Shown here: positions 1,531 through 49,221 of the stretch, piece after piece
Layout of the letters: each line of letters opens with the position of its first letter
Position numbering within the stretch: the first letter of the stretch is position 1
Assembly (NCBI RefSeq): GCF_006345805.1
Contig: NC_043011.1
Span: 61,516,464-61,580,463, forward strand
Source: Octopus sinensis
Lineage: Eukaryota
DNA length: 64,000 bases
Reading direction: 5' to 3'
Notes under the pieces: model-generated
Told to the model about the DNA's origin: nothing
Database searches by the model: none
What the model saw: the letters and a program-made list of their open reading frames with translations, nothing else
Position numbers and translations under genes: made by a program

Positions 1531-4500
1531 TCGTTGGGCTGCAGACACTCTGGGGCGTCGTCAACTCAAAGAGTAAGTAAATAATAACGATCTTCGCTAC
1601 CTGTTTGAAAGTGTGTTGTTGTTCATCGAATACTATATGTAAATTATCTCTGTCATTTCTTGTATATCACCCAGTGAAAACATGCCAGATTAACTTAGAA
1701 ATACAACCATGAGTTTAGAAAATCGTCTGCTGATGGACTTCGACTTCGTATGTCACCTTATGATTGCCTGGAGATTTATACCAACCATACAACCTTTTGT
1801 TAAACTGGTGTATTTGTCTCAGCAGACATTTTTCCCGGATTAATATTTTGATACATGACTATACATATATATATATATATATTAGAAATGGCAGCCAAAT
1901 AGGTCACCATTTCTCCTACTAGTAAAAAAGGAAATATTATATTGACAAGGAAATGAACCTCTGGTTCTAATCCAGAGACGATTTCGTCTATAATTAATCC
2001 AAATAGGCTGGGATTTCGTTATTTTCTTTCTCTTTACCATATACGGGTTGCAAATTCTGTTTGTTTATGGATACTTTTTTACTAGTAGGAGAAATGGTGA
2101 CCTATTTGGCTGCCATTTATAATATTTTCGGTATGTGGTTTTGAGCAACTTGTTGCAATTAACCCTTTATTATAATTAATATAATCCTTACCAAATATGG
2201 TATTTTCCATACCGATAAAACTACTAGGTGAAATTTATTAATTTTATTAAATTAATTATATTTCACCCTTTTTGTGTATATATATATATATATATATATA
2301 TATATATATGTAATACATATTTACATAAATACATACATATGTATATACAAGTATATATATGTATATATGTATGCATGTATGTATGTACGTATGTGCCGAT
2401 TCTTTCTAGGTTTTACTTAATAATTTTTCTATAATTGAATATTTTCATTTAAGTATATTTATACGCATAAGTACCATATATAGATTTAGGCTTTCAATTT
2501 TTGACAATTTTTGGTGCCTGTAATTGGCTACATTTGTTTCAATGATGCTCGTTGTGGAGTATGAACATCTTATGCTATGTTTGTTTGTTAGTTTGTAGTA
2601 CTTGTGCATGGGGTGAAAGAGTTTTGACAGTGTTTTGAAAGCCTAATGTAGCTAATAGTGTAGAGACTTGTATGTTGCTGGGGAAAATTAAACCAAATGA
2701 TTTTTTCTTGTTCTATTCTTACGTAGTTTATATTTTGTGGAGTTCTTTGTTTATATATTGCAACTTCTTGATGCATCCTTCCTATGGGCCTGATGTGCCT
2801 AGTTTCATGTGCCAAGGAAAAGTAAATGCTCAGCTCATGCAAATTAATCTGTAAGTAATCTGAAACATTTCAAATTTCCATCGCTCTAACAACTCCATCA
2901 ACCTACCGACCCCTATTACACGCCAATAAGAAAAAGTGTTTCAGAAACCGATTTTTCAAAAACAAGACCCTTAGTCCACTTCAGAGGAAGACCCAGAACT
3001 TGAGCTTCTATTTTCTATTCCCATTCCGACCGCATTCTGCAAACTGATCAGCTATGAGACGCAGCGTTTTGTAGGGTGAGTTCAAATTGTTGTTACATAT
3101 ATCTCTAATCTGCTTCTCCTACAAAGGTCTTAAAATTTTTAGAATGCACCGCAATTATTGCAGCAATCCATTTTGAATTTTACAGATTGTTTCCTTACTG
3201 CAATATACCTAGGGTTAGCGAACAAGGAGATTTGTTCTCATCATCATCATTGTTCGACCTTGGTCGAGACAATGGAATTTACCATGCTACGCCAGACTTC
3301 ACTGTCCATCATGGTATTACGAAGGTCCTGTTGCTGGATGCCGGTATCCCTGGAGATTACATCAGGGTAGGAGGGTGTGCGCCCTCTGGTATTGCGAGTA
3401 GATGGCTTCCAGAGGAGAAGAGTAGAAATTACCTCTTTTTCAGCTCTACAACAATGTCCAGCAAACTGGACTCTCCTACCTTTCACAAGAGATGACACAG
3501 CTGGTAGTTTCCCATAAATATTTGCATTTTGTTTTGATGGCGCTCCACGAGAGATTTTGAGCTCTCATAAGGAGGCGAGTGTAGGTTCCATCCAACCACC
3601 TCTCAAGCTTCTTTGATAACGTCCAGGTTTCTGAGCCATATAGTAGAATTGGTTCGACTGTGGCTTTGAAGATTTCAAGTTTGAAGTCTCTACTTAGATT
3701 TGATGACCAGATCTTATGCATGTCATTACAGGCTGACCAGGCCATACGCTTTCTAGTTAGAAAATCTTTTCCATATGATGATATGTATGACCCAAGATAT
3801 TTGTAATCAGAAACCATATTTAAGGGCGCATTGTTGAGAGTATGGATGATGCAATCACTGATAGACAGGCACTTGTTTATATATTCACTCTTGGCCTCAT
3901 TGAGTTAAAGACCTACACAATTTGAGGCTTGTTCGAGAGATTGTAAAAGAGACTGGTCATTGGAGAGAGAATCACTGATAAGAGCGATGTCGTCAGAAAA
4001 GTCAGTGTCTGTCAAGTATTCAGCTGGGTGTCTGGAACTTCTTCTTGGTTTTATTTCAAAGCCCTTGCCAGAGATGGTATCAACTGATATACGTAGCACA
4101 TAGTCAACGACAATGATGAAAATAAATGGGGCTAGTGTGTCTCCCTGCAGTATTCCCGCTTTGATTGAGAAAGATGATGTTTCTCCGTCAGGGGTTAAGA
4201 TGGTTGAAGACGTATCTGTGTAGAGGACCTTGATGGCAGAAATGATTTTGTCTGGTATCTCATAGAGCTTAAGGATTTCAAACATCTTGTACCTATCTAC
4301 AGAATCGAACGCTTTAGAAAAGTTTACAAATACCATTGCAAGATCGCGATTAAGTGCTTTTGATTCTTCAATAAGTCTGCGTAGGCATAGTATCTGGCTC
4401 AGCGTTGAGTGCCCATGTCTGAATCCATTTTGGTTCTTTCGGAGCAAAGGTTCAACAAAAAGGACAAGACGATTTAGAATGAGTTTGTTGTACAGTTTTG

Positions 4501-47500: not shown

Positions 47501-49221
47501 GTGAGATAGTGAACTAAATTATAAACCATATTTTTGTATAAATTCTTATAGAAGTAATTTGAAATTTGCCATTCGACTAAAATCAAAACTTTAATATTGT
47601 TGATTCTTTTCTATTCAATCAACATTCAAATAAGCGATGGAATTTGTTCTACTCTAGGCACAAGGTACAGAATTTCTTGGGAGAGGGCAGTCGATTAGCT
47701 CGACCCAGTACACAAATGGTACTTAATTTAATCGACTCCGAAATGATGAAAGGCAAAGTCGATACCGGCTGAATTTGAACTCAGGACATAACGGCAGACG
47801 AAATACCGCTGAGCATTTTGCCCGGCGTGCTAACGATTCTGCCAGCTCGCCGCCCTTAATAAGCGATGGAATATAAATATCAGTACGCTAGTATTTAGTC
47901 ATGACTGTTTACGTCGTTGTATTTCTGTATACCACCATGTTGATTTTATCGATTAGTAAAGTTTACGAGAGCGAAATATTAATTTTAACCCAATTAATCA
48001 GGTTCTCACATTTTTATTCCAGCTGTTCCTAAAAGTAAAATGTCAAGGAACCTTTCAGTCCACGTTATGTTTTCACACTGTGCCTTACTAATACTTATTC
48101 GGTGCACATTTTTGTGATGGAGGAATTAAATACCAAATACCAATATATTTGATGTAAGGACAGTTATTAAATATCACACATTTCATATTGATATTTTACT
48201 TTCACAATATTTTCAACTATTTTCCTTCGGTAGGGAATAAAAATGGCTGTTGAATTATCTGACAGTATTAATCCGGTGATATAATAATACTAACACGAAT
48301 ATATCAAGAAATTGTCATAGGAATATCTCAATGATTATTATTTCCAACTAAAATCTCAATTCTCTGTTGCATTAGCGAATCGTTAACAGAAAATATGCTA
48401 TGTATGTTCATTATCCGTGACGATGCGGTTTCGATATAACTCTGGTGACACAGTGATATATCTGCATAACCCTTAATAGAAATGTATTTATACACTGTAG
48501 GCTAACGATATTATAAACAATGTCCTTAATCAGAAAATAATACTGTAATGTTGTTCTGATAGGACTGAATGTTACTAAAATATTAGCGTCCTGCCAGTGC
48601 AATATAACAATTACTGTATGTATTATGTGACTGTAACATCGATTATGCCAGTGTAACATCAGAGTAAAACTGTTGTATTATCTTTGGGAAGTCTATTGCC
48701 AATTTATCTTCGACATTTCAAGGAAATATCTAACATTTCAGTTTGCAAATTGGTGAAAGGTTGATTGATCCCTTAGCATATTTCTTTAGACTTTTCCTTT
48801 ACACAACACCTCCAACAGTTTTGGAAGAGAGTTTGGGATTTGCTTTAGTTAGATCGCTTTAGATCACTTTAGATCACAGGTGACGAAGGGAAAATGGAGC
48901 TGTTTGTTAAGTATTGTTGTGAGAACCAGTACATGATAATAGAAGAGGCAGGTTTTGTTAAGCATATGTAAAATATTTGCTGGGGGATGCAAACCTCGAA
49001 ACAAATAACAAATATGTAGCATTGAAACATGGCAGAGACTGATTGGTGGGAAGCTAGCGCGGTCGGCATGTCGCATAAACTAACGACAGACAATACTAAA
49101 TTATCTACGAGCAACTCCATTTGTCTATTTTCATTCAAACATCTTTTCAATAGAAATATTTCAATAGCAGTTGTATTCTATTATCATTGCAGTTAATATT
49201 CCATTCAGCACTTATTACTGA
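44581..49221 (+). CDS. G5: secreted six-Cys peptide precursor, 97 aa (exons 44581-44614, 46301-46330, 46873-46975, 47356-47453, 49193-49221)
   Basis: Canonical splice sites, open frame. [97 protein letters not shown]. Confidence 0.88.
44936..45227. mobile_element. G5-specific insertion in a (TA)n tract ending in a 65-bp foldback
   Basis: Absent from the equivalent intron-1 position in G2-G4. Arms 45085-45149 and 45163-45227 differ at 3 positions. Confidence 0.7.

Follow-up and report, generated by a model that had tools for sequence, protein, structure and literature searches.

What kind of genes lies in a 64,000-nucleotide (nt) stretch of the Octopus sinensis genome (NC_043011.1, positions 61,516,464 to 61,580,463, hereafter the window), where short cysteine-rich coding segments recur at regular intervals, and what might their products do? 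The tandem array of genes encoding small secreted six-cysteine proteins is real. It contains four intact genes on the + strand, which we call G2 to G5, together with a divergent paralog (G0) and a decayed relic (G1). Because no exon of these genes is longer than 103 nt, they are missed by open reading frame (ORF) tracks and gene finders. For the reasons set out below, we consider it probable that their products are small helical proteins, braced by disulfides and secreted, which serve as ligands or binders outside the cell and are under diversifying selection.

A six-frame search combined with inspection of splice sites showed that G2 to G5 share an exon plan of 34/30/103/98/29 nt. The search returned five copies of exon 4, with its RL(R/G)MYKECA motif, and five of exon 3, with its C-x5-C-x19-C pattern, all on the + strand. 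Exons 3 and 4 measure exactly 103 and 98 nt, and both are bordered by AG acceptors and GT donors. The 30-nt exon 2 was found in four copies, where a polypyrimidine tract and a CAG acceptor precede TTATTGGGTTGCAG... and the donor reads GTATGT. The same four copies possess a 34-nt exon 1 that carries the ATG, reads ATGAGATATATTCTATGCATTTGTCTTA(T/C)CGTTG and is followed by a GT(G/A)AGT donor. Downstream, a 29-nt terminal exon supplies the tail LNIPFSTYY. The joined exons of each gene form a 294-nt ORF of 97 codons, with AG/GT at each internal boundary. A TATAAG box is found 50–53 nt upstream of the ATG and an AATAAA polyadenylation (polyA) signal 42 nt past the stop. The preliminary description of this locus had proposed the exon plan, the split leader, the cysteine spacing, the core motif, the splice sites, the TATA-like box and the polyA signal, and for G2 to G5 it was right on all of them. 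Its statement that six paralogs follow one plan is accurate for these four; exon 2 of G0 has 42 nt, and G1 is a relic only.

The units of the array are repeated with a period of 8.4–10.4 kb in AT-rich DNA (~34% G+C) that holds many microsatellites and interspersed repeats. G2 (16826–22859, +) has its TATAAG box at 16826, exons at 16879–16912, 18788–18817, 20227–20329, 20707–20804 and 22784–22812, and its AATAAA at 22854; its product has 97 amino acids. G3 (25712–31236, +), which also codes for 97 amino acids, has the corresponding elements at 25712 (TATAAG), 25764–25797, 27357–27386, 28676–28778, 29159–29256 and 31161–31189 (exons), and 31231 (AATAAA). In G4 (34116–41632, +), exon 1 is present twice (34166–34199 and 34599–34632), as a 433-nt tandem duplication (33881–34746, 97% identity) has generated two identical units of promoter plus exon 1. 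Its other exons are at 36517–36546, 37955–38057, 38438–38535 and 41557–41585, and its AATAAA is at 41627. G5 (44531–49268, +) is the final member of the array, with TATAAG at 44531, exons at 44581–44614, 46301–46330, 46873–46975, 47356–47453 and 49193–49221, and AATAAA at 49263; its likeness to the other units stops soon after the polyA signal. Intron 4 of G4 and intron 2 of G0 are larger because fragments bearing a retroelement reverse transcriptase have inserted into them, at 39457–40529 (+) and 3476–4513 (−), respectively (Pfam RVT_1, E-values of 6e-20 and 2e-14 for the G0 and G4 fragments).

The precursors of ~97 amino acids begin with a conserved hydrophobic leader of ~21 residues that is divided between exon 1, MRYILCICL(I/T)V, and exon 2, VIGLQLC(W/C)C(S/L). 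The mature protein has ~76 residues and a mass of ~9.2–9.5 kDa, so that both the lengths and the split leader of the preliminary description were confirmed. The domain is a two-exon module, with the first three Cys residues (C1–C3) on exon 3 and the last three (C4–C6) on exon 4. The spacing C-x5-C-x19-C-x8-C-x8-C-x13-C is kept in all five readable copies, G0 included, and the RL(R/G)MYKECAxxxGP core is likewise invariant down to G0. The fixed framework thus comprises the six Cys, EAW-K-P, (N/R)FC-RL-MYKECA and GP. Rapid replacement between paralogs is seen in the N-terminal segment and in portions of the final helices. The net charge of the mature peptides of G2 to G5 spans −1.1 to +7.9, with G4 at −1.1, G2 at +0.8 and G5 at +7.9, and reaches +9.9 in G0.

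Do these genes belong to a family? We combined the five mature window domains as a profile and searched a collection of 5.8 billion proteins. Two Octopus bimaculoides proteins annotated as ‘uncharacterized protein’ were matched: LOC128249871 (XP_052830374.1, 101 residues; HMMER E 4e-25) and LOC128249908 (XP_052830460/61, isoforms of 112 and 119 residues; E 4.7e-19). Given these E-values, the family lies far beyond chance. A search of the same 5.8 billion proteins with the single G2 sequence found no match. In the reverse direction, a HMMER scan covering the full set of 1.84 billion representative proteins recovered the same relatives and added LOC128248155 (XP_052824891/92), a predicted secreted protein of 540 residues encoded on another chromosome and composed of ~8 tandem copies of the domain. 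Outside Octopus that scan gave no relatives apart from one bacterial tetratricopeptide repeat protein, which we rejected as a repeat artefact. A third search, with a 15-domain profile, added only a fragmentary Octopus vulgaris model (E 0.16). An O. vulgaris hit proved to be a chimeric 141-kb gene model of which the first 47 residues belong to the family.

The relatives share with the window proteins similarity over the whole domain, six Cys in register, an intron just past C3 and hydrophobic N-terminal leaders, recognized by inspection as MNFFLHICLVIVVVGLQTLWG and MKYFLCICLLIVVVGLQTCWS. The six Cys (C8, C14, C34, C43, C52 and C66 of the domain) are invariant in 15 of 15 domains, namely those of seven single-domain proteins and the eight repeats. 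On its chromosome, we rebuilt the LOC128249871 gene from exons measuring 37/39/103/98/29 nt; their translation is identical to the RefSeq protein, an independent confirmation of where, and in which phase, the introns interrupt the module. In LOC128248155, every repeat is split by an intron right after the third Cys, as in the window genes. The domain thus behaves as a mobile module of two exons. The relatives differ from the window genes in that no database protein matches the G2–G5 subfamily with its LNIPFSTYY tail and 30-nt exon 2, and none of them has a described function.

As far as the searched databases show, the family appears to be restricted to Octopus, and our literature search found no paper that mentions the family, its loci or its peptide motifs. 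These results bear out the view that it is an undescribed, lineage-specific family. The epithets ‘hidden’ and ‘invisible’ do not apply everywhere, as RefSeq models of the O. bimaculoides relatives exist under uncharacterized names, and the multi-repeat relative of 540 residues had been missed.

The non-coding DNA of the window is collinear with O. bimaculoides CM046618.1 at ~83–93% identity. There, LOC128249871 occupies the position of G0 and is followed by a G1-type exon-1 relic and then by a G2-type gene. The order is the same in both species, and thus the layout of the array predates their split. LOC128249908 and one further member are found ~80–100 kb away on the same O. bimaculoides chromosome. 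Adjoining LOC128249908 is another annotated gene, whose 157-residue product is truncated where the locus ends (L002 18856–25107, CM046618.1); it holds the family exons HCLDETYCPEAEKKYPSDFNIESFC and RILMYTDCARKIEDLQCIKELNAYYKFFDFC, which means that the O. bimaculoides cluster spans at least 125 kb. We also noted that isoform X1 of LOC128249908 has a seven-residue insert, LNRKRRE, between leader and domain. Its dibasic KRR site is a hint that a protease of the prohormone-convertase type processes some members of the family.

Within the window, G0 (1531–7606, +) is the divergent member. The 30-nt exon previously placed at 1531 is in fact the start of its 42-nt exon 2 (1531–1572), followed by exon 3 at 5434–5536 and exon 4 at 5912–6009. 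Collinearity with O. bimaculoides puts its exon 1 ~35–70 nt to the left of window position 1, position 3 aligning 35 nt past the O. bimaculoides exon 1; the window begins that much too late to include it. An ATG at 1459 was considered as the start of G0 and rejected, since only an assumed intron of 35 nt would bring it into frame with exon 3 and synteny places exon 1 outside the window. G1 (11438–14173, +) had been counted among the paralogs on the five-exon plan, and it is only a decayed relic. It retains an exon-1-like piece at 11438–11474 (MKYFLRFCLLNV, with a GC donor instead of GT), whose residues GKSRMKYFLRFCLLNV are the same in the O. bimaculoides relic. It also retains an exon 3 at 13367–13431, truncated after 65 nt and cut at 13431 next to an element resembling a short interspersed nuclear element (SINE). 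Its exons 4 and 5 have been lost in a deletion that borders this element, and an exon 2 was not detected in the window.

Which terminal exon is used? G0 has two candidates of 29 nt. The proximal one (6467–6495) reads KEDRQRHRG and the distal one (7529–7557) IHIPVSSQF, each followed by a stop, with an AATAAA at 7601 for the latter. G0 may use either. The distal ending had been proposed before; the RefSeq model of the O. bimaculoides ortholog uses the proximal exon instead and ends with NEDRQRHRG and a stop, and the distal exon and its AATAAA are conserved in G0. In G2 to G5, a proximal candidate with a good acceptor offers 31 codons, PVPKS...CTFL and a stop (21531–21625 in G2; equivalents at 29984–30078, 39264–39358 and 48023–48117; all +). 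By position it is the homolog of the final exon annotated in the G0 ortholog; it is read in a different frame, however, and evolves like an intron. We prefer the distal exon 5 for these four genes because it is invariant among them through the polyA signal and conserved, with its AATAAA, in G0 and O. bimaculoides; the proximal exon is therefore the less likely of the two. Reading through exon 4 was also considered as a source of the C-terminus and rejected, as the frame is not conserved.

A second copy of the exon-5 block is present ~250 nt 3' of exon 5 in G1 to G4 (14115–14173, 23005–23093, 31384–31472 and 41780–41843). Its features are an AG acceptor, polyA signals of its own and a 29-nt frame that reads LLQHLVLKL and a stop. 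The block may serve as another terminal exon, or it may be a duplicate without function.

The most distinctive property of the array is the distribution of its differences. In pairwise comparisons of G2 to G5, exons 3 and 4 together differ by 9.0–18.9% and introns 2–4 by 4.9–7.1%. Fisher tests of exon against intron gave p-values from 1e-9 to 4e-5 for five of the six pairs and 0.014 for the sixth. Exon 3 taken alone differs by 19–25% in five pairs (7–25% over all six). Exon 1, by contrast, differs by 0–3%, and exon 5 is identical in the four copies; from exon 5 to the AATAAA there are one or two variable sites in ~90 nt, against 10.3% variable columns in intron 4. For the mature part, the ratio of nonsynonymous to synonymous substitution rates (dN/dS) is 0.65–1.1, and variable sites are distributed over the three codon positions as 21/17/19, with no third-position bias. 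Between G0 and its ortholog, exons 3 and 4 have a dN of 0.12 and a dS of 0.40; the resulting dN/dS of 0.31 indicates constraint. Exon-3 types and charge seem to alternate along the array, with G1, G3 and G5 on one side and G2 and G4 on the other. Intron distances do not follow the same alternation. A two-gene (A/B) duplication unit may lie behind this pattern.

Could G2 to G5 simply be recent duplicates that drift without function, the G0-type gene alone being functional and the open frames mere leftovers? Their dN/dS values and the lack of codon-position bias would be expected in that case, the neighbouring G1 has decayed, no G2–G5-type protein is present in the public protein collection, and introns differ by only ~5–7%, so that frames could have stayed open by chance for some time. 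Drift cannot, however, make exons diverge two to four times faster than their flanking introns. Moreover, the six Cys, splice sites, start and stop codons, leader, exon 5 and polyA signal are intact in four of four genes, exon 1, exon 5 and the 3' untranslated region are more conserved than the introns, and the syntenic G2-type copy of O. bimaculoides also has its six-Cys exons open. We regard non-functional drift as quite improbable. Diversifying selection on the mature peptide fits the excess of exon over intron divergence and is its likely cause.

What fold does this framework adopt, and does it resemble anything known? We modelled the mature G0 ortholog LOC128249871 of O. bimaculoides as a stand-in for the window proteins. 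The AlphaFold model consists entirely of helices (predicted local distance difference test score, pLDDT, 83; predicted template modelling score, pTM, 0.70). The preliminary description had suggested structure prediction followed by Foldseek; against 350,542 PDB chains, two models had no significant match, and an N-domain chain of RGMB ranked among the first. Likewise, no Pfam family was above threshold for the proteins or domains of the family, and no clear match to a characterized family emerged.

One known family alone, RGM_N (PF06535), surfaces in the searches with Pfam, PDB sequences and Foldseek. Among Pfam families it ranks first for eight of the 15 domain copies, with E-values from 0.0029 to 0.06 that do not reach the gathering threshold (16.1 bits against a cutoff of 24.2), and LOC128249871 matches it with an E of 0.014. 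The small five-domain profile matched no PDB sequence. A profile search of all PDB sequences gave five hits at E ≤10, at values of 0.14–1, and all are N-domain chains of RGMA, RGMB or RGMC, aligned on FCxxLRxYxxC...C with C3, C4 and C5 in register; the RGMB HMMER alignment reads DSEFCKALRAYAGCTQRTS-KAC. With Foldseek, the RGMB N-domain chain 6z3m_O ranks fourth and third for the two models, at template modelling (TM) scores of 0.37–0.47 and an E of 4–6.5; the Foldseek signals as a whole had an E of 3–6.5 and a probability ≤0.15. Aligning our profile with three RGM N-domains by hhalign gave P = 7.6e-4 and a score of 21.3, compared with a mean of 8.9, a standard deviation of 2.0 and a maximum of 15.8 for 200 column shuffles; the RGM sequences used here agree with the fragments printed in the HMMER alignments, the only check on them. 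The hhalign probability is 25%, falling to 1.3% in global mode, and the similarity covers only ~28 columns, from C3 to C5. Each of these signals is thus below its own threshold.

In the RGM N-domain, three helices form a bundle that has three disulfides and binds the BMP2 and GDF5 fingers (PMC7354924). Human RGMA, RGMB and RGMC carry it, with structures in PDB 4UHY, 4UI0 and 6Z3M. Both domains are small, with six Cys in the same order, and share the local motif FCxxLRxYxxC(x7-8)C with three Cys in register; the octopus domain is also predicted to be helical. They differ in spacing: C1–C2 is 5–7 in our family and 4 in RGM, C2–C3 16–19 and 22, and C5–C6 11–13 (13 in the window genes) and 21. RGMs are large co-receptors anchored by glycosylphosphatidylinositol (GPI), with a vWD-like domain and GDPH autocleavage, whereas the octopus proteins are free single domains or pure repeats. 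The window proteins and their relatives of 97–119 residues end 9–10 residues past C6, have no other Pfam domain and lack a vWD-like domain, a GDPH site and a GPI signal. RGMs also evolve slowly, in contrast with the mature exons of the window; such fast evolution and such swings in charge would be unusual for modulators of a conserved developmental pathway.

We conclude that the family does not belong to the RGM family, and that distant homology to its N-domain is a lead, possible rather than probable. It is unlikely, in our view, that the octopus proteins are standalone RGM-N-like modules, distant homologs that bind BMP/GDF-type ligands as soluble traps or modulators, the 540-residue relative being multivalent. 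A more specific scenario, in which a divergent RGM N-domain offshoot was freed in octopods, multiplied in single- and eight-domain forms and recruited as a fast-evolving extracellular effector, for instance against TGF-beta-family ligands or a comparable cystine-knot surface of prey, pathogens or mates, is slightly less probable again. If it were true, the octopus proteins would be the first family of the RGM-N type to stand alone, a developmental co-receptor module released and repurposed.

We thus return to our preferred reading, that of secreted helical mini-proteins under diversifying selection. The leader would direct the precursor into the secretory pathway, and the mature part would fold as a small alpha-helical bundle braced by three disulfides. 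Outside the cell, the proteins might act as ligands or binders built on a constant scaffold, with surfaces that diversify against a changing partner, for example a target in prey or pathogens or a receptor for mating or recognition. Unequal crossing-over would make the array grow and shrink, and the introns would remain alike even as differences among the peptide-coding exons persist or arise.

Several points weigh against this reading. The dS of the exons is also above intron divergence, and part of the contrast may stem from homogenization of introns by gene conversion, or from old exon variants that were retained or imported, without positive selection on new mutations. A dN/dS near 1, taken alone, is also expected from relaxed constraint. 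No protein matching the spliced G2–G5 genes is present in the 5.8-billion-protein collection, whether searched with G2 alone or with the five-domain profile. Their terminal exon is assigned from conservation. Secretion is suggested by the leader, which was judged by inspection. Lastly, the AlphaFold alignment has 20 rows, and pLDDT exceeds 70 in only two of five models.

Which roles are compatible with these features? Venom toxins, antimicrobial effectors, pheromones and gamete-recognition ligands had been put forward; the faster evolution of the mature-peptide exons fits any of these, and adds only that. Immune effectors typically evolve fast and expand in tandem. The helical model and the strongly basic character of G0, G3, G5 and both O. 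bimaculoides single-domain proteins (isoelectric points of 9.0–9.7, charges of +5 to +10) would also suit cationic antimicrobial or host-defence peptides that disrupt membranes. Host defence would suit the basic copies, yet two others, G2 and G4, are not cationic but neutral or acidic. The conserved core is not amphipathic but polar and aromatic, no model of a defensin, macin or other antimicrobial peptide matches, and a compact bundle of ~9 kDa is larger than typical helical antimicrobial peptides. A role as membrane-disrupting antimicrobial or host-defence peptides is very improbable.

In line with the absence of such models, a Pfam scan at E ≤10 of three window proteins, LOC128249871, LOC128249908, LOC128248155 and the chimeric O. 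vulgaris model, with 15 domain copies, detected no CHH/ITP, insulin-like, macin, defensin, attractin, saposin-like or other curated cysteine-rich family. This agrees with the earlier remark that the cysteine spacing fits none of the first five of these. With venom and defence superfamilies of the conotoxin type, the array shares a conserved signal, a hypervariable mature peptide on a fixed Cys framework, tandem expansion and exons that evolve faster than introns. This evolutionary mode can be recognized in the window genes (exon 1 at 0–3%, exon 3 at 7–25%, introns at ~5–7%, all Cys invariant). There is no match in sequence or framework, and the mature octopus protein is larger (76 residues), helical and devoid of a propeptide in the window genes, though isoform X1 of LOC128249908 has its KRR insert. 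A literature search on expression in venom or salivary glands found no paper. Water-borne pheromones of the Aplysia attractin type offer a tentative parallel, as they are also small, secreted, helical molluscan proteins with six Cys; they differ in their cysteine spacing and show no Pfam or sequence match.

The array belongs to a familiar class, that of taxon-restricted, fast-evolving arrays of cysteine-rich secreted peptides. Taxon-restricted genes abound in cephalopod genomes, and little has been described of what they do in venom, skin, suckers and reproduction. This locus is a compact example: on a six-Cys helical scaffold it combines four intact copies with an older paralog under constraint, and its peptide-coding exons form islands of divergence. 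It should be useful for studying the origin and diversification of new secreted effectors. ORF tracks and gene finders overlook such genes, and a family profile made from the present alignment would allow their annotation across octopod genomes. The scaffold is also a candidate source of stable 9-kDa binders.

Beyond the array, two weak exon-like pieces were detected. One resembles exon 2 and reads LLVSVI, a stop and LQPCWS (60612–60650, +); the other resembles exon 1, KSTMKFILFLCLL (62945–62983, −). They may be relics of further members or chance matches.

The SINE-like element mentioned above is ~170–220 nt long and present in at least 12 copies in the window, on both strands: 7005–7222, 13437–13636, 18248–18408, 20992–21213, 26740–26904, 29445–29661, 35924–36088, 38726–38941, 45759–45919, 47643–47859, 57849–58002 and 62499–62667. 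Each of G2 to G5 has one copy in intron 1 and another ~190 nt past exon 4. The element is also found in O. bimaculoides (L001 2325–2492 and 13776–13986). Finally, a long low-complexity tract of (AAT/AAC)n and poly-A at 8053–8562 gives rise to spurious ORFs of 118–152 codons on both strands.

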